DNA of 64,000 nt from Stylophora pistillata (taxonomy: Eukaryota). The stretch is taken from assembly GCF_002571385.2 (NCBI RefSeq), contig NW_019217842.1, positions 517,064-581,063 on the forward strand, given 5' to 3'. Below the pieces are notes generated by a model that ran no database searches, was not told the origin of the DNA, and was given only the letters and a program-made list of their open reading frames with translations. The position numbers and the translations under genes are program-made. Positions 1 through 46,049 of the stretch are shown here, piece after piece; position 1 is the stretch's first letter; each line of letters begins with the position of its first letter.

Positions 1-1706
1 GGTTCCGGCTGGAAAAGCGTGGCGGCCTAACCGTTATGGCGCCCTAGACATTCTACAGGTGTGTAAATGGGTGAAGGCGAATTTAAAACGGGGAGTAACC
101 ATGTGATGGACTAGCATCTCATCCAGGGGGAAGGGAGAGTAGAAATATTTCGTTGCTCAGGCTGTATGGGCTACTGGCCTGACGCAGACTTTTTTTAATT
201 CTAATACGTGCATCTCCATGAACAGTGCCGGTAAGTGTTTTTTTTTTTAAGACCCTCAGAGAAAAACTTCGTATTAAATTATTTAATTAAGTTGTAAACC
301 TACCATTAATTTTTAATCATCAATATTCTTATTTATTTATTAATTTACTTTTATTATTTTTAAATTTATTATTTTTCGGTCATTGCAGGAACTCCGGGTA
401 TTCCGAGTATTCCGGTTCCAGTTCCGAATTCCAGCATTCCATGTTTTCCAAATTGCCCTCTGTCGTATATTATCGCCTATGTTCTATCGTCTATCGTCTG
501 GGTTTTATTACATGCCAAGTTTCGGCCCGGGCTTTCCTTCTTGACATGGAATGGCTATTTCCCCGAGTTGCAGATTTGAAGTAAAACAATCATGAAATAA
601 ATATAACAAATGAATTTGATACCTGTCCCTTTCAAGCGCAATGTGGAATCATTTGTCCTTTTCATCGACGCAAGTACGGTTTCTCGGAATTTAAGTTGGG
701 GAAACCCCTTCCCCGTACAATGGTTAATCCTCATTAATCACCACATGACACATGCAAGAGAGTGTAAAAGAAAATGTTACATATTCGTGGCATCACATAG
801 CACTTTAATGATGAAACTCAGTTATGCTACTGGCTGCTTATCAATCTATTGTCCCTATTTATATTAACATATGCTATATTCCGTCTTTTCAAATAAAAAC
901 TTAACCAGACCTGTATTGGTTGATATAACTCAAATAATTAGCAAAATTTAATTCCAATGTTTGGGCCATCTTTTGCAATGGTTACAATCAAAAGTTTATG
1001 AAATCTCTTTCCCGCAGATGCCAGAAAGCCTTAAGTTTTATTGAAATACCGAATTGAATACCTATTAGAATTTACAATTTATTGTTTCAAAATCTGATAA
1101 ATCGTTATTTTCAATTGAATTTGATTTTATTACGCCGGGAACGTTAAGTTTCTGTCTGCGTTCTCTTCTTTATCGTGACCTTATTATTTTCCAGTTTGTG
1201 AGGAAATAATGAATTATTATCCTAAAAATTAGATTGAGAAGAAGCTTTACTATCTCGCCGCACAGGAGGCCAATTGGGTGCCTTTAAGCTGTCAGGAAAC
1301 GGTATAGTTCGTAAACGTGCTGGGATAGACCAGCATCCCATCCAAGAGCTAGAAAAAATTGCCTCTAAGTAATGGAAGTAGTCCAGATGCAAAGGGCAAC
1401 AAGCTACTCTCATGACAGTTGGCTTCAGATCCTGCATCTCACAGCAGTGGGATTGATTTGAAATCTTTCTCAGGATACATCGTTGGATTTGATGTTGAAA
1501 ATTATAAAGGCCTCGCGTACTTATATTTACGAACTAGACCCAGTAAGAGAGCCGGTTATGGTGTTCAAGGAAACTGTAAAGGTAGCTTCCATACATCAAT
1601 GTCGATCAACCGGTGTAAGAACGGTACGATATATAAGAACGATACGGCTAACAACAGGGTCATCTGCTTTGAGACATGTCAAGTTAAAGTTTTTGAATTA
1701 TTCCTT

Positions 1707-4700
1707 CTACAAACAAAGCAAGTACAACATAAAAGCAATAATAGTGCCATATAAAAATATTCCGATGGGTGGGTAGGGCCGTCCAGCAGAAGAAGCTGTG
1801 GAACAAAGGAAAACAATGTCAAAACAGATTCAACCCCTAACACAAAGAAAATATGTAAATGCAGCTTACTCCACTTTAAAGTTAACCATTAATGCAATGT
1901 AATTCCCCTTAAATGAGGATTGTGATAAATCTAAAGCTGGCAAAAATTAGAAGACTCAAGTATAGGAGAGTTTGCTTACCCTTACACTGCCTGCCATTTC
2001 CATGATATCCTTTCTTGCAGGAACAAATGTATGATCCCCGGGTATTGATGCAGTTAGCCTTTGCGTGACAATTATGGATACCCTCTCTGCACTCATTTAC
2101 ATCGTAACATGAGAAACCGCTACCACGGAAGCCAGAATTGCAACTGCATGTATAAGAGCCATCAGTGTCTCTGCAATTTGCATTCCAGTCACAAGGCCGA
2201 CTACTACTGCACTCGTCTTTATTGTGGCAATTTTGTCCGTCGCCTTGGTATCCTACAACGCACTTACAGCTGAAAGAACCAGGGGTGTTCGTACAACTTG
2301 CTTTGGTACTGCATTGAGCTGTCCCTTCCTTGCACTCGTTGATATCTACGAAGGAAAAAAATAAGTTAATCATCTCTCTCATCCAGCGATAGAGTAGTAT
2401 ATGAACAGCAACCATAGAAAATCCCGCTCCTATTATCCCACTGCACATGACCGGAGTGTCTAAATAAGAATCATGATAGTAGATGCCATGGACTACCTTT
2501 TTATAGCGCTTCAATTGCTAATTGTATGCTTACCATTGCATGATTGTCCATTTCCACGATACCCTTTGTTGCATATGCAGTTGTGCGATCCTGCGATGTT
2601 TGCACACCTGGCGTAAGGGCTGCAAAGATGACTTCCATCGCTGCATTCGTCAACATCTTGACACACATAACCATCGCCGGAAAACCCAGAACGACACATA
2701 CATTGATGAGAGCCCATAATGTTTTTACATTCTGCATCCCTATCACACTTGTGAGATCCATCGCCACATTCATCAACGTCATGACATAAAAGTCCGTCCC
2801 CTGAGAATCCCCGTCGACAAGTGCACTTGTAGGAGCCGACAGTGTTATTACAGAATGAATGAATGCTGCAATCATGCGTGTTATTCTTGCATTCGTCGAT
2901 GTCATGACAAGACCGTCCATCGCCTTGGAATCCTTCCAGACAACTACACTTGTAGGAGCCTATGGTGTTATTGCAGGATGCATGAATGCTACAGTCGTGT
3001 TTGTTAATCTTGCATTCGTCGATGTCATTGCAAGACCGTCCATCGCCTTGGAATCCTTCCAGACAACTACAACTGTAGGTGCCTATGGTGTTATTGCAGG
3101 ATGCATGAACNNNNNNNNNNNNNNNNNNNNNNNNNNNNNNNNNNNNNNNNNNNNNNNNNNNNNNNNNNNNNNNNNNNNNNNNNNNNNNNNNNNNNNNNNN
3201 NNNNNNNNNNNNNNNNNNNNNNNNNNNNNNNNNNNNNNNNNNNNNNNNNNNNNNNNNNNNNNNNNNNNNNNNNNNNNNNNNNNNNNNNNNNNNNNNNNNN
3301 NNNNNNNNNNNNNNNNNNNNNNNNNNNNNNNNNNNNNNNNNNNNNNNNNNNNNNNNNNNNNNNNNNNNNNNNNNNNNNNNNNNNNNNNNNNNNNNNNNNN
3401 NNNNNNNNNNNNNNNNNNNNNNNNNNNNNNNNNNNNNNNNNNNNNNNNNNNNNNNNNNNNNNNNNNNNNNNNNNNNNNNNNNNNNNNNNNNNNNNNNNNN
3501 NNNNNNNNNNNNNNNNNNNNNNNNNNNNNNNNNNNNNNNNNNNNNNNNNNNNNNNNNNNNNNNNNNNNNNNNNNNNNNNNNNNNNNNNNNNNNNNNNNNN
3601 NNNNNNNNNNNNNNNNNNNNNNNNNNNNNNNNNNNNNNNNNNNNNNNNNNNNNNNNNNTGCGTGTTATTCTTGCATTCGTCGATGTCATGACAAGACCGT
3701 CCATCGCCTTGGAATCCTCCCAAACAGCTACAATTGTAGGAGCCTACTGTGTTATCGCAGGAAGCATAAACACTACAATCGTGCCTATTAGTCTTGCATT
3801 CGTCGATGTCATGGCAAGACCGTCCATCGCCTTGGAATCCTTCCAGACAACTACAATTGTAGGAGCCTATGGTATTATTGCAGGATGCATGAACACTGCA
3901 ATCGTGCGTGTTATTCTTGCATTCGTCGATGTCATGACAAGACCGTCCATCGCCTTGGAATCCTCCCAAACAGCTACAATTGTAGGAGCCTACTGTGTTA
4001 TCGCAGGAAGCATAAACACTACAATCGTGCCTATTAGTCTTGCATTCATCGATGTCATGGCAAGACCTTCCATCGCCTTGGAATCCTTCCAGACAACTAC
4101 AATTGTAGGAGCCTATGGTATTATTGCAGGATGCATGAACACTGCAATCGTGTGTGTTATTCTTGCATTCGTCGATGTCATGACAAGACCGTCCATCGCC
4201 TTGGAATCCTTCCATACAACTGCACTTGTAGGAGCCTACGGTGTTATTACAGGATGCATAAACACTACAATCGTGCATGTTAGTCTTACATTCGTCGATG
4301 TCATGACAAGACCGTCCATCGCCTTGGAACCCTTCCAGACAACTGCACTTGTAGGAGCCGACAGTATTATTACAAAATGCATGAACGCTACAGTTGGGTG
4401 TACCTGTAATGCATTCATCGATGTCATGACAATAACGTCCATTTCCTTGGAATCCTTCCAGACAACTGCACTTGTAGGAGCCGACAATGTTATTACAAAA
4501 TGCATGAACGCTACAGTTGTGTGTACCTGTTATGCATTCATCGATGTCATGACAAGACTGTCCATTGCCTTGGAATCCTTCCAGACAATTACACCTGTAG
4601 GAGCCTATGGTGTTATTGCAGGATGCATGAACACTGCAATCGTGTGTGTTAGTCTTGCATTCTTCGATGTCATGACAAGACCTGCCATCGCCTTTGAATC

Positions 4701-5695
4701 CTTCCAGACAACTGCACGTGTAGGAGCCTTGAGTGTTACTGCAAGATGCATGAACACTGCAGTTGTGAGTATTAGTATTGCATTCATGAATGTCGTAACA
4801 AGACCGTCCGTTGCCCTCGAATCCATCGAAACAACTACACCTATAGGAGCCTACAATGTTGTCACACACTGCATGGTCGCTACAGCTGTGTATTTCGCTC
4901 TTACATTCATCAATATCCTCGCACGAAAATCCATCTCCTTGGAAGCCATTATTACAAACGCAATTGAAATGCGTCGTATCTTTTGAATTTGGTTTGCAAG
5001 TAGCATTTCCATCACAAAATGGCTTCTGACGGCAATTAAAACTTGTCGCTGGTGTTGGTGCATCTGTTAAAGAGAGAGGAGACGGATCAATACTTTAATA
5101 TCAAACTTTAAAATTCCAGATTCTTTTTCATGACGACGAATTTTCTGGAGGGCCATGTCTAATAATTCAGAACATCAAACCGAGAGAAATGAGCTTCACA
5201 TCATTAAGTGAAAAATGGCTATCGAAGCATTTTCTCATTCGCAAGTTCACTGTCGAAAGTAATCATAGACTGCTGATATCCATCGCTTTTCTGTTCGTAG
5301 CTTTAACGATTGAGTTAAGACTTAGACAAACATCGAACAAAAGATCATTACTATCGGTAACTGAGCTAGTTAATATGGGTCAAAATGTATAGCAACTCTC
5401 ACGCCAACATTTAAATTATTAGGGGTAAATGCCACAGCAATCGCAAAAATTTGCATGTTAATGATGTGCTGAATTCGATCATTTACCCAGCGACAAAGAA
5501 TAATTTCCTTTACTTACCTCCATTTCTGAGAGATTTTTTAGGTGGTGATATTAGTGCAAATGCCAGAAAAAGACAAACAGCCACAACGATCAGAGTCAGA
5601 AGTCCTGCCTTCCAATTCGACTTGATCGATCTGTTTATGGCTGTTAGAGAGAAAACTTCATGCTTCGATTCTATCCCTTGGTGTGTCTCATCCAT
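1707..5695 (-). CDS. Tandem calcium-binding EGF repeat (fibrillin-like) surface protein with N-terminal TM and C-terminal GPI-like hydrophobic tail; 4 coding exons
   Basis: Exons 5695-5518 (MDETHQ...[30 protein letters not shown]), 5063-2534 (includes N-gap 3111-3658), 2345-1980 and 1795-1707 ([29 protein letters not shown]). All introns are GT-AG, phase 1 and frame-consistent. Repeats match DIDEC...C.N..GSY.C.C..GF.GDG..C; 19-20 EGF units are visible plus an unknown number in the gap. Confidence 0.88.
2780..4920 (-). repeat. Coding tandem repeat, 123-bp (41-aa) cbEGF unit; near-identical 246-bp dimer at 3660-4151
   Basis: gcattcgtcgatgtcatgacaagaccgtccatcgccttggaatcc recurs every 123 bp; the assembly gap lies in the most homogeneous part. 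Confidence 0.93.
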
Positions 5696-6519
5696 TGCTC
5701 TCAATAGTTCGCTTGTTTGGTATTATTATCTCCGAGAATATATTTTAAAAGGAGTCGAACGTACGAGTATCGCTATCCGCGTGTGTTTTACAACCTCAGC
5801 ATATTTGAGCTATTTAGGTTTCACGAAAATCTGCTGCATGATTCATTACACGTCTTTCGGTTTCTAAGAAATCTGCCGGGGAACCCCCTAGTCCTTCTAC
5901 GTATTACCTCTCATTGGTTGTCGAGCTGACCGATATAAACAATTTCGTTATCAATTTGGGATTTTACTGAAGATTATTTTTAGCAAAGTAGCATCGAATA
6001 ATTACGCCAGGGGTCAAGAATTAGGATTTTGACAAACATCTGCCATATCATAACTGTCGTTTACAGATACGAGTACTATAGAACAACTCTCAAATGAAAA
6101 AAAATTCACGCGAAAATGGCAAAAATAACAGATTTTCAATGTTGAGCAATGTGCTGATCGAATGATATGACAAGAAATATAGAGTGAACAAGCAGTTAGA
6201 GAGCGTATCAAGCAAGAGAATGGAATGTTATCTATATAAAACAGGGTTTTATGTTTCATGGTAGTCACTTGAATTTTGAGTGAATTTTTATGTTTCGGTG
6301 GCAACTCTGCGCTTAGTGATAAGCGATTGTTTCCTTAATAAGAAAAAGGCCTACAGCAAAAACAATCAACAGAAAGATCCCGCACGGCCCACGATCCGCG
6401 GAAACTGAATCTGTTTTCAAGGACGACTGTGCATGATGTTTACCATAATGTCTATCATTTTCTCTGATCAGGAACTTTGCTTCAGGTTTTGATTTTTTTC
6501 ATGATATAATTGTATAAGA

Positions 6520-7406
6520 TATTACTTCAAATCTTGCTCTAGGGATATTGTTCCAGATATTTCTCAATTCACCACACATTCCCTAAGAGCCGGTGGCGCT
6601 TCTGCTGCAGCTAATGCTGGTGTTCCCGACAGACTCTTTCAGAGGCACGGGCGTTGGAAATCTGTTTCCGCAAAAAATGGCTATGTCGGTGATAGTCTGA
6701 GTTCAAGTTTGTCAGTGTCAAAAAAGCTAGGTATTTAATTCTGTATCGTTTACTTTTAAGTTCATATTTCCCTTTCTTTGGCTCTAGCAGGATGCGTATA
6801 CTACAAGGCTGGCTGACTCATCCTGAATAAACTTTCACTTTGAATATCTCGCCTGAGTGTAGTCAGAATATGTAATTTCTGACGCTTGAGTGACATGGGA
6901 ACGAATTAGTCAGAAATTAATATTCTGACGGCACGTTGAAGAGGTTCGCGTGGCATCATCGTAGTTTCGGATTATTTAAGATTTTCCGGNGAAAATTAAG
7001 TCATTCTAGGTCGGTCAGTCTTATTAGGTTTGACCATTTTATTTTTTCTTATTTAATGTAATTTTGTTTTACAATTCTCTGTAAAATATCACCGCTCTTA
7101 TTGAATTTTCTGTTTGATTAGTAATGTACTGAACTAGGTTTATTTTAATTACCCTTTCCACGGGGTACTGTGCTACTGCATTAGATGAGGAATACGTTTC
7201 CACGTATCTTTTGGCCACTTCTAAAGAGTGGTGTTTTAGTGGTTTTTCGTATCTGGCGTAGCACAGGCTAATGTTTATAACCCTTTAGTTTCAGTAAATA
7301 CCTCCAGAACATTGCAGATTCTAGTAGGATGCGCATACTACAAGGCTGGCTGACTCATCCTGAATAAACTTTCACATCGAATATCTCGCCTGAGTGTAGT
7401 CAGAAT
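6520..7406 (+). mobile_element. 3' remnant of tyrosine-recombinase retrotransposon (Ngaro/PAT-type DIRS) with split direct repeats
   Basis: Translates to THSLRAGGASAAANAGVPDRLFQRHGRWKSVSAKNGYV...KKLGI* (HxLR, HGRW and catalytic Y; stop at 6738). Followed by 85-bp direct repeats at 6785-6869 and 7322-7406. Confidence 0.8.
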
Positions 7407-8002: not shown

Positions 8003-9853
8003 ATGTTCAGATCATTGGTCCTGTTAAGTTCAGCTTTAATGCTCTTTATCATATTCATAACCGGGGAAACAGGTGGGTCCATAGAAGTTTTTAATTAAAA
8101 TGCGATGTGAAGAGTTTATTTTGTATTCCATCGCGTAAATATCTGAAAGAGAATCATTGGCTCACGAAAACGATTAATGAAATTGCGCACAGTTGCAGTT
8201 TAAGGTCGCGATGTAAATTTCAAATTTTGTCAGTTGTTCGTTAGAAATGAAAGACCTTTAATCAATCGCTTAAAACTACTGGTAAAGAGATGAAGCTCCA
8301 CCTTTTCTTTGCTAGAAACTGGTAGCCATGATTGAATTACAAGGCATCCCTTGGAGTGAAGTCGATGCACCACGGGAGCTTACTCTAAGAGCATCCTGCG
8401 GCACACTAACATCAATTTTTTTTCACTCAATGTTTTTCCTCGCGTTAAGGACTTCGCCGAAAAGGAGGGACTCCTCGTTGTCTAGATGTTTTATTTTTTT
8501 TTGTGTCATGAGCGTGTGAGAAAAAAAAAATTCAAATCCTCACAAAGAATCAAACCTTAAACCTACGGATTCAGCGCTCCGATGCTTGAGACCAAGTCTC
8601 TAGACCAAATTGAATATTTTCGTCTGTTTTGGGGTACTTTTCGAGATTCAATGAAACTGTTTTTCCAATTGAAATGAATTTTCTAGAATTGAAATGAATT
8701 TTCTAGAATTGAAATGTCAAAATTTCGGATCGTTTTTTATTTTCGCTTGGTGAACGAACTCTGTTGTAAACCAGACATTCGACAGTGTTCGTTCTAATAT
8801 TCTTGGTCGATTCAATTTTTTTTGTAGGAGTGAACGTAAATGATCCAATTACCCCGGAAGAGTACCAAGCAGGGATTGTCAGAGCAGGATTTTCTACGAA
8901 TTGGTTCAAAACGAAGACGCCGATGAAAAAGTACTGGAAACAGAACATCATAGACGTCCATGAAAAAGGCCTTAGTAACTTAAGACTTCGATGCAGGGCA
9001 GATCTCTACTCATATGACTACTCTATCGACAAATTCAAACGGTTTCTTAGCGACCTGACGACCGTTGTCGACCATTGTCTGAAACATGATGTGATTCCAA
9101 TCATCTCCTGGGTTCACCATCAAGCAGAGGCCTGCGCCATGGAAAAGGACTTTAAAGCCTACGTGAATTGGTGGACAGCGGTAGCACAGCAGTTAAAGGA
9201 CAAGGACTATAGACTGAGTTTTAATCTTTTTACAGAACTAGGAAAAGACACTTGCGAACGAAATGACAAAAGTGACGAGAGTCTTCGCGAGAATACCGAG
9301 AAATATAACCGATGGACCATGAACGTGACGCACGAAATCCGATGTACAAGTGGGAACAACGCTCAGCGTATTCTGATTTTGGGATCTCCCTGAAAAACTG
9401 CCGAGGACTTATCTAAAACTGATTAAAAAATCTATGAAAATTATAAATATATGATGGCTGAGTGGCATATTTATGCCTCTGGTCCAAACAAAGTGCTTGG
9501 TTTCCAGAAGCACGGGAGCGGTGACGGCAGTTCTGAAGGCCAAAACAACGTCAAAACTGCAATTAAACACGCAACTGATTATCAAAGGGGAGAAAACGGT
9601 TTGCTGACATATCTCGGAGCGTGGATGCCGCAAGATGACGCAAATGGTTCGATAACGGAATCGGAAGCCACCAACTTCGCCCGTTTCTTTGTTGCCGAGC
9701 TGCACAACGTCAGCATACCATGGTCTTTGAACGTTCTGGATCGCTACTATGATACCATAAAAAGGAAAATGGCTGACGGGGAACCAGACGATAAAAGGGC
9801 AAGCGCTAAATATGTCCAGGATTTTGGACAATATTCGTGAAGTAATGTCATAA
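8003..9853 (+). pseudogene. GH5-fold (cellulase family) secreted glycoside hydrolase-like, copy 1, disrupted
   Basis: Signal-peptide exon 8003-8072 (MFRSLVLLSSALMLFIIFITGET), phase-1 intron, catalytic exon from 8828. Motifs SNLRLR, IISWVHH, FNLFTEL, EWHIY, YLGAW, IPWSLN. Premature TGA 9391-9393, TAA 9424-9426 and a frameshift near 9760 relative to the paralogs. Confidence 0.82.
8485..8600 (-). mobile_element. Degenerate tRNA-derived SINE fragment in GH5 copy-1 intron
   Basis: Reverse complement reads gcatcggagcgctgaatccgtaggtttaaggtttgattc (B-box-like) followed by a T-rich tract; a related fragment lies at about 19010-19130. Confidence 0.45.
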
Positions 9854-11975: not shown

Positions 11976-12452
11976 AAAAATTAAAAATGAATAAAGGCTG
12001 ATAGTTTCGAAAGAAACTGTTTGGGGCTGCGTCGGTGGGAGTAACGAAATAATTTGGATATATCAACAAAGTTGAAATGGTAAATTGGCCACCGTAACGA
12101 CGAAGGGCTAACGCTCGAAACGTCAGCTTTTGTAATCGTTACGGTGGCCAATTTACCATTTCAACTTTGTTGATATATCCAAATTATTTCGTTACTCCCA
12201 CCGACGCAGCCCCAAACAGTTTCTTTCGAAACTATCAGCCTTTATTCATTTTTAATTTTTTTAAAAGTAGATTAAAGGTAAAGGCAGAATATTGGTAGAG
12301 ATAAAAAGTGGAACAGCGCGAACATTAAACTTAGAAAAATTCATCAAGCGGACTACCCGTTTTTATTTTGTTTAGGTGCGTTTTGGCTGTCTGTCCCTAG
12401 GAAGTAAGGCCATAGGAGATATATGGAAAAATAAGAGATCTATATATATATA
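11790..12452. repeat. Large inverted repeat (about 310-bp arms) centred on a Penelope hammerhead motif
   Basis: 11790-12100 is the reverse complement of about 12136-12452, with a few substitutions and one short indel; loop 12101-12135. Confidence 0.9.
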
Positions 12453-13332
12453 TCTTATTAACCAAGCGCGAGGGCCGTACTGGGAGANCACGTTTCACCC
12501 TCACAACCACTCAGTTAAATCCATCATTCTTAAAAACTTTAAATTACTTCAAAACGATCCAGAGACAAGCACTATCTTTTCGCAGCCTCCGCTCATTTCA
12601 TTCAAACGCGACAAAAACATAGGCAATTTTTTGGTCAGAAGTTCTTTTCAGACTAATGACCAACCAGGCACTTTTAAATGCGCTCGTGCACGATGCAAAA
12701 CGTGTCCTTTCATTCACAACACTGAGAAAATATCGGGACCCAAACGATCCATTAAGATCACCGATCACTTCACGTGCACCTCCGCCAATGTAATCTATTG
12801 CATAACTTGCACTTATTGCAAAAAGATTTACATCGGCGAAACAGGCAGAAGACTAGGTGACCGATTCCGAGAACACCTTCGCGACGTGGAGAGGAATGAC
12901 AAGGACACATCGAAACCAGTCGCTAGACATTTTAATTTACCTAACCATTCTAAGCAACACATGGCAATCTGCGGTCTTTCCTTACACTTAGGTAGCACGG
13001 AAAGCCGGAAAACTCTTGAACAAAAGCTCATCTTTCAAACCGGCAGTCTAAATCCCACAGGTATCAACGAACGCTTTTCATTCCACTAATTTATTCGTGT
13101 TTTTCTCGTTGCCATATTCCCACCAATCACGTAGCTCCTTTTTCTGCCTTTAAAAGCACACACAACCCACAATTCTCCTATTCGCTCCGACGAAGGGCTA
13201 ACGCTCGAAATGTCAGCCTTTATAATCGTAACGGTGGCCAATTTACCATTTCAACTTTGTTGATATATTCAAATTATTTCGTTACCCACACCGACGCAGC
13301 CCCAAACAGTTTCTTTAGAAACTATCAGCCTT
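11985..13332 (+). mobile_element. Penelope-like element: GIY-YIG endonuclease 3' part plus pseudo-LTRs with hammerhead motif
   Basis: ORF 12376-13089 has NVIYCITCTYCKKIYIGETGRRLGDRFREH...GINER. Terminal repeat cgacgaagggctaacgctcgaaa...gaaactatcagcc occurs at about 12098-12245 and 13184-13332, with a partial inverted copy at 11985-12100. Confidence 0.9.
13184..13217 (+). ncRNA. Minimal hammerhead ribozyme motif (Penelope pLTR)
   Basis: gct-CCGACGA-agggc taac gctc-GAAA-tGTC-agc: stem I gct/agc, stem II, core boxes and GUC cleavage triplet; the core reads CCGA rather than CUGA. Confidence 0.65.
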
Positions 13333-17480: not shown

Positions 17481-18758
17481 CTAGTTGTCCAGAACGTTCA
17501 GGGACCATGGTATGTTCTTCTTACGCAGCTCCTCAACAAAGAAACGGGAAAATTTGATGGCTTCTGTTTCTGTTATGTTTCCCTTTGTGTTGTCTTGAGG
17601 CATCCACGCGCCAAGGTAAGTCAGCAGGCCAGTCTTCTTCGAGAACGTCGTTGCATAGCTGATTGCTTCTTCGACATTTGCTTGGCCTCCAGATTTACCA
17701 TCTCCACTCCAGAACTTCTGGGAATCCTTCACTTTGTTGGGCCCTGAAGCATAAAGATGCCATTCAGCCATCATGTACGGATCATTTTTATAAATTTCAG
17801 GATCGATATCAGGTAAATCCTTGGCAGTTTTTCCTGGCGACGCCAGAATTAATATTCGCTTAGCGTTTTTGCCACCCGTACCTCGGATTGCTTTTGTTAC
17901 ATCTTTTGTCCACTGGTTATATTTGTCTGTTCTTACGCGAAGACTTTCGTCACAACTTTTCCCTTCCTCTTTACAAGTGTCTATTCCAAGTTCTGTAAAG
18001 AGATTAAAACTCAGTCTGTAGTCCCTGTCTTTTAGCTGCTGTGCCACTGCTGTCCACCAGGCAACATAGGCGTCATGGTCCTTCTTTGTAGCGTAGGCTT
18101 CTGCGCGATGGTGAATCCAGGAGATGATTGGAATCACATTGTGTTTCAGGGAATGGTCGACAACGGTCGTCAGAAAGCCAAGAAACCGTTTGAATTTGAC
18201 GGCGGAGTAGTCGTATGAGTAGAGATCTGCTCTACATCGAATTCGTAAGTTACTAAACCCTCTGTCGTGGACGTCTTTAATGTTCTGCTCAGAGTACTTA
18301 TTCATTGGTTTCTCTGTCTTAAACCAGTTTGTGGAAAAACCTGCTCGAATCTGACTTTGATACTTTTTAGGCGAAATTGGCCCATCTGCCAAAAAAATTT
18401 TCGTAAACATTAGAATTAAATAGAAATTGTAGTTTTCTTGTCTTTGTTTTTTCACTTGCGCATCAGTTTATTTTATTGCATGCTCGAGTATGCACACAAT
18501 ATCATTTCTTTTTAAAGAAACTGCTTCTATTTTCTCTTTCTAGCGGAAGTAAACCCTGATTCTCGCTTATACAAGTCAGATTGTGGACAATGCAAACGGA
18601 TTGAACCAAGTTTTTTTTTGTTTTGTTTCTCGATAAAACCACATTTAGTGTAGCCTGAATAACAGAAAGTGGCAAAATCGTTCAGACCCACCTTTTCCAC
18701 CAGCTGCAGACATCATAAACAGCACGGAATACGAAAGCAAAACAAGGAATCGGGACAT
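17481..18758 (-). CDS. GH5-fold secreted glycoside hydrolase-like, copy 3 (most intact; TAG 34 codons before the ancestral stop)
   Basis: Signal exon 18758-18692 (MSRFLVLLSYSVLFMMSAAGGK), phase-1 intron, exon 18385-17481 open through IPWSLNVLDN*. The homologous tail continues in frame to TAA at 17378-17376. Confidence 0.85.
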
Positions 18759-21086: not shown

Positions 21087-24000
21087 TTAGTGTGGGGCTT
21101 GGTAAAAAAAATACAACGCTACGACAGTAATTATGAATGCAAAAAAAGCCATAAAGAACTTATCCATTATACTGGCAGCAACCTTCCATTCGTTTGTTCT
21201 TCCACTCGTCGACTTTCGCCTTCTATTCACAGAATTATGCGATGATCCAAAAAGTCGACCAAGACAATGCAGAATGATCATTCGAACCCACATGGGCATT
21301 TCACCATCGCAATGCCGGCCGTAGGAAAAGTTTAACACCAGACAAGTGGCAGCCAGCGAAAGTGAGATCAGAAACATTGTGACAATGTAGTATTTTCCCA
21401 AAAGGGGAGCGCTATTTGAAGTCGATGGAAGATTTTGGTACACGAGCTGCAGGAACACTATCATGGCCAACAGGACGGTTATTCCGAGTTGCATCCTCTC
21501 TCCAGACTCTGGCGGCAGGTAGAAGCCTACCAACACCATGGCTGTGATTATTATGGCAGGAACAATCAGGTAAAGAGTATAGAACAAGGGCTTTCGGCGA
21601 ACGTGGATAGTATATGTTATGTCCACGTACGGTTTCGGGCAGCAGTCGTAAAACTTTGATGTCCTGAAAATGAAATTAGACTTGATCTTAAAGTTGCTAT
21701 TAAGAGCGTGAAGTAAGCGGATTTAAGAACTTGTCTCTCAGCATCGTAAGCCCATATGCGCTTTGTTTTCGTTAGGATCTAATTGAAAACTGCTCGAACG
21801 TTTCATTATAGTGGCAAAATAGACATGTTACATTTTGGAACGTATTTAAGGAGACTCAAAAAATATGGTAAAAGAAAAAAATTAATGGTATAAAGGTTTA
21901 TGTTAAAGCATAAGATTTACCACTACCTTTTCTGCTCCAGTCCTAGCAGCTGCCACTCGCCATGTTCCGTGTAGATGTCGTCACTGGAGGCATTGGTGAG
22001 AATGCGCATGTCTAAACGTGATTCGTCGTGGGTCCAGCTTCCAAACTTCATCGGGCACTTTTGATCGTCGAAAGGAAAATACCTTAAACATAAGCAGAAA
22101 AAATATTTGAGAAGGGACTTGGATGCTTAATTGCTGGCTTTGAAGAACTTATATCATTTACTGAAACAGGATGCGAGTACCACTACATGCCCTGAATATA
22201 GTGCCAACAATCTCTTATGACACTCTAACTATTTTCCTGATCTCATCTGGGAGGATGTTCAACACAGTAAGTCTTTACACTAGAGTATCACCCAAAATGT
22301 TACAAATGAAACAAGCCTGTGAGAAAAATTTACCGCACGTCGAGGTGGCAGACTGTGATAAACATCGCGGGTGCAAGCCAAATTGTGCTTCCATTCCAAA
22401 ATATTATGACATCTGTTTTATACTTGTGAGTTCCACCAGAGAAAGTAAACTCTGCGCTGAATAAAGAGGAAAAAAAATGCAAATGACATTCACGGGTCTT
22501 CACTCACTTTTGCCAACAACAACAACAATAACAACAACAACAACTTTATTTGTACCCAACAAAAAATACTGATAAAAAAATGATAAATTTAAAAGAATAT
22601 TTAGTTCTTATTAACCGAGTGGGAGGTCTGTATGGGAGAATCTTGACCGAGGTGGCCAGTACAGCCCGAACGCAGTGAGGTCTGTACCAGCGACCGAGGC
22701 TGGTACAGTATCTTAGATGCCAATTTTTTAAATTCTTTGTACCTTTTTTTTCTAGACCGGTCTAGATGCCGGTCTAGATGGGAAAATCTAGACCGCTTTC
22801 AATATTGATTTCAGCCAATCAAATTCGTGAATTCGGTAGTTCCCGGTCCTTGTGAGACACAGCCATATAATAAAAAGGAGTACTAGCTGACCCAAATAAC
22901 CATATGGGCGAGAAAAAAAGGGCAGCTATACTTAGGTGATTTATCTAATGTAATTATGTGTCAGATGTAACACACACAACACACACAACACACACACACA
23001 CACTCATTCATCATACAAAACAAGGTCAAGGAAGCAAGGAATATCAGAGTAAAAAACAACAAAAGGCCGGAAAAATTATTAATATTTGTCGAGAAGAATT
23101 AGCTCAAGGTTCTTCTTAAAACGTTTCAGAGGAAGAAGCTTTATGTCTTCACTTATATCATTCCAGACTTTAGCACCCTGAAATCTTATGTTGAAGATTC
23201 CATAACTTGTTCTGGCATTTGGAATAGTATAAGTCATTTTGTTAGATAATCTGGTATCATAATTATGTAATATCCTAACAGATTTTGCCATTAGATCATC
23301 TGAATTCTATCCCATAGCTTTTTCATTTTGTAAGTCATAAACAGCCCTCCTTCAATCCCTAAAGAGCGTTAAATTAACCAGAACTACATAGTTTCGGATA
23401 ATTATGCAGCCATGATACCATTTGCAATTTGTATATTGTCGAGAAGGTTGGCTCGGCTAATAAGGAATCCAACCACTAATTTGGAAGTTTATACTGAGCG
23501 GAACCTTTTTTCTTTGTCCCAAGCTCTTGCTAGTGAAATGCATGGGTCTCAGCACCACATACAATACAAATGGCAGTTATCTCATGTTGTGGGGGCATAG
23601 CGTCTCAAACGCAATGTTTAAATTGATGAGAAGTGATAAAGGGAGAGAATTTTTTGCCACCCGAATGTAGATCAGAGCTCTCTAAATTTGATGCGAACGT
23701 AATAAGAATATTATGAGTTATCTGTTCTGGAATCTGCTGTAAGTTTATATCAGATTGCCTAAAAATAGCTTTAATGGAAACAAATTTTCTTCAACTCAAA
23801 ACAAGAAAAGGTGAGATATATCTGACTGATACGTTTGCTATGCTAACTGCAGTCTCTTCAGTTCCCCCGTTCGTTCAATTTGCGCCTGCGCATTCATACC
23901 ATAAACTCGGTTAGCAGCTCGTTTGTTGAGTTTCTGTTCTCACCACATCTTTAGGTCATCTGCGATTTATTACTGGCAAACACACACCAACGTGCAATCT

Positions 24001-44759: not shown

Positions 44760-45299
44760 GTTTTCCGCGGCAATGATAAGCGTTTCGTTGTTATTAGAGG
44801 AAAGTGTTCGGATTGGACGTCAGTGAAGTCCGGGGTGCCCCAAGGAACAATTCTTGGCACTATTTTGTTTATCATCTACATAAATGACATCTCAACAGAT
44901 TTGACATCTACTGTTAAGATTTATGCAGATGATACTAAAATTTACCGAACAATCAGTTCGCCAGATGTTGATATTCCTGCCCTGCGGAGTGACTTAGATC
45001 GATTGAGTATATGGGCAAATAAATGGCAAATGCACTTCAATCCGGATAAATGCGAGGTCATGCGTATTACACATAGAAAGGATAAAACTAAACCAATTTA
45101 CTCGCTGGGGGGGCAATTTAGGTCGGTAGAGAACACTAAGGACCTAGGAGTAACCATCTCTTCTGACCTGTCCTGGGGCTTGCATGTATCTGCAACGGTA
45201 AACAAGGCAAATATGGTACTAGGTATCATAAAGCGGTCCATCGGAACTAATAGCCAGTACGTGTTTTCGCAGCTCTATAAATCACTGGTCAGGCCCATA
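44760..45299 (+). mobile_element. CR1/L2-clade LINE reverse transcriptase fragment
   Basis: VKSGVPQGTILGTILFIIYINDI...YADDTKIY...WQMHFNPDKC...KDLGV...LYKSLVRP, running into an N-gap. Confidence 0.9.
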
Positions 45300-46049
45300 N
45301 NNNNNNNNNNNNNNNNNNNNNNNNNNNNNNNNNNNNNNNNNNNNNNNNNNNNNNNNNNNNNNNNNNNNNNNNNNNNNNNNNNNNNNNNNNNNNNNNNNNN
45401 NNNNNNNNNNNNNNNNNNNNNNNNNNNNNNNNNNNNNNNNNNNNNNNNNNNNNNNNNNNNNNNNNGCATGTCACTCTCAGAACTCAAGTCATTTACGCAT
45501 GCTGGGAAGGAAAAAAAACATCCCTCTGAAATGTGGAGTTCTAGACTTACCATTTTAAGATGAGCACGTTCAAATATTCACGGAATATAGATGTCTATGC
45601 AAAACGTTTTCATCTCCAATGGAACTTGTCCACTTATTCTGAATATTGCTTAGTCATTCACGCAATCAGTTCTTGCTCGGATAATTTTGAAGTGCCTTGT
45701 CCTACCTACATTTACTTGTAAACGCACAAATATTTACCGATGGTTCTGCGAACATTTTAAACTATACTCAGTGCTCTTGTTAGTTTCCATCTTCAGGCAA
45801 AGTAAACGTTGTTATAAAGATGATAAGTTTCTAAAGAAACAGCGGTGCTGCGTCGGTAAAAAAAACAAGACTACTTTATTTAAACTCGGATGAAAATGAG
45901 GCTCGTTAGGCCTCTAGCAATAGAGATGCTAATATACCGAGGAAAAATTTATGAATATAAAATACAGAGTTTAAAAATAATATAAGCCTAAATATAAATG
46001 ATGATATAAAATTACAAATTACTTAGTTTTCTTATCTAATTCCTGAAGG

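Follow-up and report, generated by a model that had tools for sequence, protein, structure and literature searches.

A coral gene for a calcium-binding EGF array between two hydrophobic ends, a candidate surface glycoprotein with two membrane anchors

The gene and its transcripts

The window is a stretch of 64,000 nucleotides from Stylophora pistillata, and all positions are counted from its first letter. It carries, on the minus strand, a coding gene of four exons (5695-5518, 5063-2534, 2345-1980 and 1795-1707). The three introns are all of phase 1 with GT..AG borders, and each of them is spliced out in polyA RNA contigs from three separate studies (X4, X6 and X9). In a fourth run (X24), raw reads cover the two 3' junctions; its strand information was contradictory between bins and was left out of the analysis. 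The gene is expressed, and its structure is backed by RNA of three polyA studies. The features are as follows.

5696..5816, minus strand: 5' UTR, minimum extent; RNA contigs extend to 5704, 5779 and 5816 and show no upstream junction
5518..5695, minus strand: coding part of exon 1, phase-1 donor; 29 polar residues, a 21-residue apolar helix and an SPPKK juxtamembrane stretch
5064..5517, minus strand: intron 1, GT..AG; junction 5518/5063 in one contig each of X4, X6 and X9, shorter side 118 nt
3659..5063, minus strand: exon 2, 5' part; Pro/Thr linker, one non-calcium EGF, 10 cbEGF and the first 29 nt of another
3111..3658, no strand: assembly gap of estimated length within the 123-nt cbEGF array
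2534..3110, minus strand: exon 2, 3' part, phase-1 donor; last 84 nt of a cbEGF unit and 4 cbEGF modules
2346..2533, minus strand: intron 2, GT..AG; junction 2534/2345 in X4, X6 and X9 contigs and 4 X24 raw reads
1980..2345, minus strand: exon 3, phase-1 donor; three cbEGF modules
1796..1979, minus strand: intron 3, GT..AG; junction 1980/1795 in X4, X6 and X9 contigs and 2 X24 raw reads, shorter side 61 nt
1707..1795, minus strand: coding part of exon 4 with a GPI-type signal; ASSAG, RPYPP, hydrophobic end, stop TAG
1524..1706, minus strand: 3' UTR, minimum extent; contigs run from 1796 down to 1524, in X9 to 1416

An initial annotation, made from the DNA letters, had predicted the first and last of these junctions, and both are present in contigs of all three studies. 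Its last exon, missing from the list of open reading frames, is real; the frame has no start codon. The annotation also named the use of a different first or last exon as a risk to its model. The RNA contigs over the locus report no alternative junction of either kind.

Exon 1 starts with the ATG at 5695 and ends at 5518, with the donor GT at 5517-5516 (59 codons plus 1 nt). There is an in-frame TAA at 5725-5723, within the transcribed 5' UTR, and no second Met in the exon. The start codon, and with it the N-terminus, is therefore fixed.

The assembly gap interrupts exon 2. Its left flank stops 29 nt into the 123-nt unit and its right flank opens with the last 84 nt of the unit, so the missing part must measure 10 + n x 123 nt. 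The 548 nt of the assembly do not fit (they are 56 mod 123, and 2, not 1, mod 3), and as written the reading frame is broken. The two 246-nt blocks beside the gap are 99.2% identical, which accounts for the failure of the assembly there. Alternatively, the locus could be two genes or one broken gene, with exons 1 and 4 never on the same protein. This agrees with the shifted frame and with the fact that no RNA contig bridging 3111-3658 was found. However, gap lengths are estimates. Both flanks are expressed, lie on one strand and consist of the same repeat in register. Exon 1 splices into the left part only, and exons 3 and 4 follow the right part only; no start, end or extra junction between the two sides is reported in the RNA. 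Moreover, the gap-free relatives all have exon 2 uninterrupted, as a single open frame from the same first to the same last module. We consider a split gene very unlikely. From the open exon 2 of these relatives, we infer that the frame also continues across the gap in the window gene.

The EGF ectodomain

Pfam recognizes only EGF_CA, EGF_3 and cEGF in exons 2 and 3, and nothing in exons 1 and 4. The three coding pieces reach 325.8, 156.7 and 101.9 bits with EGF_CA (PF07645), whose gathering threshold is 27. A regular expression finds 18 complete six-cysteine modules. Eleven lie before the gap, four after it and three in exon 3, and there are two part-modules at the gap edges. The module number is at least 19; a gap close to the written 548 nt would bring it to perhaps about 23. 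The initial annotation had described about 20 or more cbEGF repeats with no other domain, and the Pfam result and the module count bear this out.

Calcium binding was judged by a D/N-x-D/N-E/Q-C start and by the Asx-hydroxylation motif C-x-D/N-x4-F/Y-x-C. Starts resembling D-x-D-E-C are present in 16 of the 18 complete modules, and so are Asx-hydroxylation motifs (16/18). The first module is without the calcium motif; the later modules are of the calcium-binding type. Consecutive modules are joined by a linker of one residue, as in fibrillin. Arrays of cbEGF modules with one-residue linkers and interdomain calcium form rigid rods. Because of the calcium motif in the modules after the first and the fibrillin-type linkers, the ectodomain is expected to form, in calcium-rich fluid, a stiff rod roughly 50-70 nm long. 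The closest solved chains are those of NELL2, uromodulin, Notch1 and the fibrillin cbEGF pair 1EMN. There is also a weak Pfam overlap with the Pvs28 and MSP1 EGF models, which is generic EGF similarity.

The two hydrophobic ends and their relatives

At the N-terminus, 29 polar residues (5695-5609) precede an apolar helix without charges, A30 to I50 (nt 5608-5546). The initial annotation, with about 28 polar residues and a helix of 20, was close. The helix has a Hessa-scale sum of -4.6 over 19 residues, and its 21 residues are enough by the transmembrane criterion of about 18. The flanks differ little in charge, with +3 before the helix and a net +2 after it. This helix (residues 30-50) is the means of entering the ER present at the N-terminus. 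Near its lumenal end, residues 45-47 read A-F-A, followed by L, a candidate -3/-1 site for signal peptidase. Ahead of this site, the apolar stretch would measure 15-17 residues, close to the maximum of cleaved signals.

The layout of helix, EGF array and hydrophobic tail is also found in a paralogue, in coral metagenome scaffolds of Tara and in Desmophyllum pertusum. The module number of these relatives goes from 11 to about 23. In Desmophyllum, the helix exon is again of phase 1 and the helix has 18-22 residues. The lead ahead of it is polar and rich in lysine, runs for at least 33-46 residues and has no in-frame Met; no small-residue -3/-1 site comes after the helix. A long, lysine-rich lead without a cleavage site favours a signal anchor, and we think that the helix probably remains in the protein as an uncleaved type II anchor. 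In a derived short-lead subfamily (contig C555 of the same genome and loci L014-L019), the lead ahead of the helix has only 10 residues. The members of this subfamily have lost the upstream ATG and share an in-frame TAG. The long cytoplasmic lead is thus dispensable, and these forms look more like ordinary signal peptides. A further exon-1 copy (C1161) shows no EGF exon within 16 kb, in a region that has gaps.

Full-length relatives were searched for by words and by profiles. The word search with the complete exon 2 of the paralogue (623 aa) covered proteins of 343-1090 residues. It gave generic cbEGF proteins only, at 39-59% identity, the best of them named 'fibrillin-like' in the databases. 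The family motifs occur in 0 of the 120 matches listed, and a GPI-like end in one of those 120 (P0068, of different architecture). With exon 3, the word search returned ORF fragments running on past the donor, and it led to the Desmophyllum locus. The full-library profile search with three exon-1 peptides returned five short ORF fragments only, all from coral metagenomes. Sequences in that library are represented at 50% identity, and another EGF protein may therefore stand for a full-length orthologue. The search for cnidarian orthologues proposed in the initial annotation has succeeded in part. The layout itself was found in Desmophyllum and in the Tara scaffolds, but among annotated proteins of 343-1090 residues the word search found no orthologue. 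Current coral annotations lack the family or contain it in fragments, which makes the RNA-supported model useful in itself.

At the C-terminus, exon 4 encodes ASSAG (1795-1782, the codon of the first Ala being shared with 1980), the spacer RPYPP (1781-1767) and a hydrophobic end of 19 residues (1766-1710). The stop TAG (1709-1707) follows directly, with no tail. The hydrophobicity sum of the end is -2.6 over 19 residues. We looked for small residues at omega, omega+1 and omega+2, a polar spacer of 5-10 residues and a hydrophobic end of 15-20 residues with nothing after it. By inspection against the big-PI rules, exon 4 has this layout, which is reportedly the canonical GPI signal (Eisenhaber et al. 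1998). SSAGRP is invariant among the pocilloporid-type relatives, and the hydrophobic tail is variable. Desmophyllum has the same acceptor and ASSA, with a different spacer and a different tail of 17 residues (sum -4.5 over 17). A kept ASSA site with a changing tail fits a signal that is removed rather than a structural helix. Exon 4 probably encodes a GPI signal. The initial annotation had read it in this way and had seen a danger in orthologues without the terminal tail. ASSA and a hydrophobic end with nothing beyond it are present in the paralogue, five metagenome relatives and Desmophyllum pertusum.

Each end has another possible reading. The N-terminal helix may be a long signal peptide, cleaved for example after A-F-A (45-47). 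The rod would then be held by the C-terminal GPI alone and project by about 50-70 nm, as an adhesion, glycocalyx or recognition molecule. The candidate site at the lumenal helix end agrees with this, and so does the short-lead subfamily, with its basic n-region of 10 residues and an apolar run of 17 before Glu. Precursors of standard GPI proteins also carry a cleaved N-terminal signal (PMC6726743). Nevertheless, the apolar run of the window gene starts at residue 30 and continues for 21 residues without a polar or helix-breaking c-region. In cleaved signal peptides, the h-regions have 7-15 residues (typically about 11) and the n-regions 1-5, and it is a short h-region that signal peptidase recognizes (bioRxiv 10.1101/2020.11.11.378711). 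Likewise, the C1161 copy and both Desmophyllum copies have longer polar leads and no plausible cleavage site. By dN/dS, the helix codons are near neutral (about 0.7-1.5), as in signal peptides, whereas the polar lead of the long-lead copies has 0.2-0.6, similar to the EGF exons; these values come from 6-20 synonymous sites, too few to carry weight. Taken together, cleavage seems less likely than a retained helix. The initial annotation had placed the helix too far in for a cleaved signal. Its length, its position and the Desmophyllum leads support this, but the A-F-A site and the subfamily with a 10-residue lead do not.

The C-terminal run, in turn, may receive no GPI and stay as a transmembrane helix without a tail. 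The protein would then form a hairpin of two helices, its rod in the lumen; with the N-terminal signal cleaved, it would be of type I and lack a cytoplasmic tail. The end of the window gene, and especially that of Desmophyllum, is hydrophobic enough to span a membrane. However, the tail has only 15 residues in L014-L017, a Lys inside it in L019, and Ser and His near its end in the C555 paralogue, where the hydrophobicity sum is only +0.2. No tail has a stop-transfer charge or any residue beyond it. The conserved parts are the small-residue block and the spacer, as expected for a processing site, and the layout is canonical under the big-PI rules. A retained C-terminal helix is improbable for these reasons.

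Double anchoring and known systems

The preferred reading is that of a cell-surface glycoprotein of the coral, possibly held in the membrane at both ends; we give it a probability of about 0.48. Because the GPI signal is likely and the retained helix somewhat less so, the odds that both anchors are present in the mature protein are about even. Under this reading, the apolar helix of exon 1 would act as an uncleaved type II signal anchor. About 29 residues would stay in the cytoplasm and the rest would pass into the ER lumen. There, the 19 or more EGF modules would fold, form their disulfides and become N-glycosylated. The GPI transamidase would cut within ASSAG, 2-4 residues past the last EGF cysteine, and add the GPI lipid. 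The rod would thus be pinned at both ends. It could lie along one membrane or arch over it, or it could bridge two surfaces. The bridged surfaces would come from the same cell, such as microvilli, folds, budding vesicles or virions, and the span would be set by the module number.

A role in tethering or spacing is what such a layout might serve. In its strongest form, the protein would be a monomeric, calcium-stiffened 'molecular ruler' with two anchors. It would space membranes of the same cell or retain budding vesicles or enveloped virions. Its span would be tuned by the rapid gain and loss of 123-nt modules, and it would be an independently arisen cnidarian analogue of tetherin. We regard this as speculative and rather unlikely as a whole.

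Very few proteins combine a transmembrane helix with a GPI anchor; a review names only tetherin, one form of the prion protein, ponticulin, Sm23 and NcSRS2 (PMC3989765). For tetherin, the two-anchor layout is the whole mechanism. An artificial tetherin made from unrelated parts works, and it is the configuration, not the sequence, that matters for tethering (PMC3989765). The rod of the coral candidate is of a different kind and would be rigid only with calcium. The candidate occurs in reef corals, whose surface architecture at the interfaces with symbiont, skeleton and seawater is poorly known. It would offer a clean test case of whether the two-anchor design evolved more than once. Cleavage of the helix would leave an unremarkable GPI-anchored EGF glycoprotein.

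Compared with tetherin (BST-2, CD317), the coral protein is predicted to have the same short cytoplasmic N-terminus, type II helix, rod-like ectodomain and C-terminal GPI. However, the tetherin rod is a parallel dimeric coiled coil of about 17 nm, and the coral rod, of about 50-70 nm, would be built of cbEGF modules, rich in disulfides and dependent on calcium. Tetherin acts as a parallel dimer, whereas no dimerization feature was seen in the coral protein. Membership of the tetherin family was considered and rejected. There is no relationship of sequence, domain or fold and no coiled coil; Pfam gives EGF families only. The term 'tetherin-like' of the initial annotation is thus suitable for the predicted topology, not for homology.

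Uromodulin and GP2 likewise combine cbEGF modules with a C-terminal GPI signal in a glycoprotein of the cell surface. Nevertheless, uromodulin has a cleaved signal peptide, 3-4 EGF modules and D8C and ZP polymerization domains. In the coral protein, Pfam finds neither D8C nor ZP, and the modules are 19 or more. Plasmodium P25/P28 and the C-terminal EGF of MSP1 have EGF-only ectodomains tied by GPI, but with two to four modules that form no rod, a cleaved signal and an unrelated lineage. The order of signal, EGF and GPI expected if the coral helix is cleaved is that of the P25/P28 or uromodulin class.

The fibrillins, LTBPs and fibulins share with the coral protein the tandem cbEGF modules, the one-residue linker, the Asx-hydroxylation motif and the interdomain calcium site. 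They differ in that they are secreted into the matrix, carry TB (8-Cys), hybrid or fibulin-type domains and lack a membrane anchor. The coral protein was rejected as a member of the fibrillin/LTBP family: it has no PF00683 or other non-EGF domain, and both its ends are hydrophobic. Of the 'fibrillin modules' of the initial annotation, the cbEGF modules are present and the TB domain is absent by Pfam. Finally, in teneurins and other type II proteins with EGF repeats, a cytoplasmic N-terminus and a type II helix are combined with EGF repeats outside the cell (PMC6510184, PMC6297184). Unlike the coral protein, teneurins are large, with YD-shell and toxin-like domains and no GPI, and their EGF repeats mediate dimerization and do not form a long calcium-stiffened rod.

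Gene structure and transcripts

The locus is a single four-exon gene on the minus strand (1707-5816). Its coding parts are the following.

5695-5518, minus strand: coding part of exon 1, with the ATG at 5695, encoding 59 residues plus one base
5063-2534, minus strand: exon 2, EGF modules only
2345-1980, minus strand: exon 3, EGF modules only
1795-1707, minus strand: coding part of exon 4, with a GPI-type tail and the stop

The three introns are all phase 1 with GT..AG borders. An in-frame TAA lies upstream of the ATG (5725-5723), and exon 1 has no second methionine. The start codon is therefore secure, and the N-terminus lies neither further upstream nor downstream. The 5' UTR contains a four-codon upstream ORF (5788-5802, minus strand), covered solely by the longest RNA contig, from run X9.

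A search of sequencing runs matched the gene in coral polyA RNA-seq data sets of several studies; the matching records carry the label coral metagenome. We mapped RNA over 1200-6600 from three polyA runs, each of a different study (X4, X6 and X9), and from one raw-read run (X24). Junctions 5518/5063, 2534/2345 and 1980/1795 occur in each polyA run, and read on the plus strand their introns have CT..AC ends. In X24, both 3' junctions are visible in raw reads. Upstream of the ATG, RNA contigs extend to 5704, 5779 and 5816 without an additional junction. Over 1200-6600, the four runs present no further junction, no start or end cluster, and no insertions or deletions. Thus, the first and last exons proposed in the initial annotation, and the two junctions that join them to the array, are those in use in these samples.

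Three other features were observed in this region. The X6 and X9 contigs follow the 5' side of the gene to 4903 and then diverge into other sequence. The reverse complement of that sequence encodes the start of an extra module, similar to module 2 of a paralogue on contig C555 of the same genome and of metagenome scaffolds L014 and L018. It represents either an allele with one more module or RNA of an expressed paralogue. At 1200-1561, RNA depth exceeds that across the EGF gene, and mates in the raw-read run are oriented the other way round from those at 1562-2104; the gene may have a long 3' UTR here, or a neighbouring transcript may converge on it. In intron 3 (1909-1979, minus strand), reading through the exon-3 donor also gives a short hydrophobic tail and a stop, and relatives have similar tails. 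It is likely a by-product of AT-rich intron sequence; the RNA has the spliced form.

The neighbouring features in the window are these.

8785-9393, plus strand: GH5 (cellulase-like) ORF
12376-13089 and 44823-45563, plus strand: ORFs with a weak GIY-YIG nuclease match and a reverse-transcriptase match, probably mobile-element remains
17481-18455, minus strand: GH5 (cellulase-like) ORF, 324 aa in one open frame; relatives occur throughout the cnidarians and in mussels
21087-21626, minus strand: exon for the transmembrane region of a neurotransmitter-gated ion channel (PF02932, E 1.8e-31)

The best named matches of the GH5 ORF at 17481-18455 are from Pocillopora meandrina (80%) and Stylophora pistillata (81%), which points to a pocilloporid-like genome. 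In P. meandrina, the gene model joins GH5 with an ion-channel domain, which is also its neighbour in the window.

The EGF array and its relatives in corals

Pfam identifies EGF_CA, EGF_3, cEGF and overlapping relatives in exons 2 and 3, and nothing else. Exons 1 and 4 match no Pfam family. Exon 2 encodes one non-calcium EGF module, ten cbEGF modules, at least one module across an assembly gap, and four more; exon 3 adds three. This makes a minimum of 19 modules, and about 23 should the gap approach its written length. The count agrees with the initial annotation, which gave about 20 or more cbEGF repeats and no other domain; the first module is of the non-calcium type. The modules carry a D-x-D-E-C start and the Asx-hydroxylation motif. 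A single residue separates the last cysteine of one module from the first calcium ligand of the next. The solved cbEGF chains matched include NELL2, uromodulin, Notch1 and the fibrillin pair 1EMN.

At the DNA level, the array repeats in tandem with a unit of 123 nt (41 residues). To the left of the gap, sequence ends 29 nt into a unit, and the right flank opens with the last 84 nt of one. Hence, the missing stretch is 10 nt plus a whole number of 123-nt units. The gap is written as 548 N, a size that is an estimate in the assembly; it equals 56 mod 123 and has the wrong remainder mod 3, which explains the two frames in the ORF list. The two 246-nt blocks adjoining the gap are 99.2% identical, and this identity accounts for the assembly failure. 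Left of the gap, the sequence is in frame with exon 1; right of it, with exons 3 and 4. In all gap-free relatives, exon 2 is a single open frame, with the same module at its start and the same at its end. No RNA contig of X4, X6, X9 or the raw-read run spans the gap. The frames of the two flanks and the relatives support, indirectly, an exon 2 that would be continuous across it.

The same genome has two more copies of exon 1 (contigs C555 and C1161) and two more of exon 4 (both on C555). The paralogue on C555 is complete, with 15 + 3 modules, and ends in the same tail exon. A locus on this contig (L009, 4845-5377) also presents a partial tandem duplication of the paralogue exon 3 (last two modules) and another, identical tail exon. 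Among 1.84 billion representatives, a profile built from the three exon-1 peptides matched just five sequences, each a short ORF fragment of coral metagenome origin. The scaffolds that contain them (L012-L019, mostly Tara Pacific) repeat the four-exon layout, and their exon 2 has 8, 10 or 15 modules. An exon-3 fragment led to a Desmophyllum pertusum contig (GCA_029204205.1, MU825896.1, 289131-309576) with three tandem homologous helix-cbEGF-tail genes. They share with the window gene the phase-1 helix exon, the phase-1 EGF acceptor and the last-exon acceptor sequence. Public annotation breaks these three genes into 82-159-residue fragments.

Consequently, the helix, the cbEGF array and the terminal hydrophobic tail are common to at least two scleractinian families. 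The observation is well founded, and this is a genuine, conserved family. The ortholog search suggested in the initial annotation recovered the layout in same-genome, metagenome and Desmophyllum relatives and found no annotated full-length orthologue; the word search was length-limited and the big library was clustered at 50% identity, so absence is unproven. Module number is 15 in L018 but 10 in L019, two near-identical scaffolds, and goes from 11 to about 23 family-wide. Rod length therefore evolves fast.

The two hydrophobic ends

For GPI attachment signals, the big-PI rules are invoked. Exon 4 reads as ten residues, 19 hydrophobic residues and the stop. The ASSAG block stands only two residues beyond the last EGF cysteine. 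Among pocilloporid-type copies, S-S-A-G-R-P is invariant and the hydrophobic end drifts. It is shortened to 15 residues in L014-L017, has an internal lysine in L019, and in C555 has serine and histidine close to the end (hydrophobicity sum just +0.2). The Desmophyllum tail retains A-S-S-A, followed by an 8-residue spacer and an unrelated 17-residue hydrophobic end. The terminal hydrophobic tail expected of orthologues is present in the C555 paralogue, in five metagenome relatives and in Desmophyllum, with no residues beyond it in any copy.

A small-residue site that stays constant, a spacer, and a hydrophobic end that varies freely and has nothing behind it together form the pattern expected of a GPI signal that is removed (general layout: PMC6726743). 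A structural transmembrane helix would be expected to look different. GPI is thus quite probably added to this protein, and the C-terminal reading is the best-supported part of the interpretation.

The N-terminal helix is the weak point. After 29 polar residues (1-29) comes an uninterrupted, uncharged and strongly hydrophobic run of 21 residues, A30 to I50, with a hydrophobicity sum of -4.6 over 19 residues; S-P-P-K-K and a short linker come next. The layout is as initially annotated, with 29 and 21 residues by translation instead of about 28 and 20. Cleaved signals have n-regions of 1-5 and h-regions of 7-15 residues, and signal peptidase selects a short h-region (10.1101/2020.11.11.378711). 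In favour of an uncleaved type II anchor, the run is long, begins at residue 30 and has no polar or helix-breaking c-region. Also in favour, a small -3/-1 pair after the helix is missing from the Desmophyllum helix exons and the C1161 copy. Against it, the window helix ends in A-F-A then L, a usable -3/-1 pair, and the charges on its flanks are almost balanced.

The Desmophyllum exons, which favour an anchor, encode 18-22-residue helices behind 33-46 lysine-rich residues with no in-frame Met, so their start must lie in a further upstream exon. C555 and L014-L019 have in common the loss of the ancestral ATG and an in-frame TAG at one shared codon, and they start at a new ATG only 10 residues ahead of the helix. 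This counts against an anchor: the long polar lead is dispensable, and the short forms resemble ordinary signal peptides more closely. Upstream of the new ATG, the old coding sequence is still recognisable (locus L008, 2382-2555; L014-L019 exon 1). The dN/dS values of 0.2-0.6 in the lead and 0.7-1.5 in the helix, from counts too small to rely on, hint that the lead is constrained and the helix is not. In the window gene, retention of the helix as a type II anchor seems somewhat favoured. Both anchors together on this protein have about even odds (near 0.5).

A predicted rod and known tethers

Work by Downing et al. in 1996 reportedly established that fibrillin-type cbEGF pairs are rigid when calcium-bound. 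By extension from such pairs, the calcium-bound array would be a rigid rod of about 50-70 nm, at 2.5-3 nm per module. The helix ends 21 residues before the first module, and GPI would be attached two to four residues past the last. With these distances, the rod would be pinned at both ends. It could then run along a single membrane or form an arch above it, or else connect two surfaces that originate from one cell.

The initial annotation described a tetherin-like rod of fibrillin modules. We checked the defining features of the tetherin and fibrillin families, and the coral protein has neither set. It does belong with the cbEGF proteins and is very probably the precursor of a GPI protein. We found no similar cnidarian protein in the literature, and no earlier description seems to exist of a protein that combines a type II-style helix with a pure cbEGF rod and a GPI signal. 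An artificial tetherin of unrelated parts showed that the two-anchor configuration is sufficient (PMC3989765). For the coral protein, the two anchors and a tethering role are predictions from sequence rules. Tetherin shows that a two-anchor layout can retain budding particles. Nevertheless, tetherin acts as a parallel dimer, nothing in the coral sequence suggests dimerisation, and the resemblance is one of predicted topology alone.
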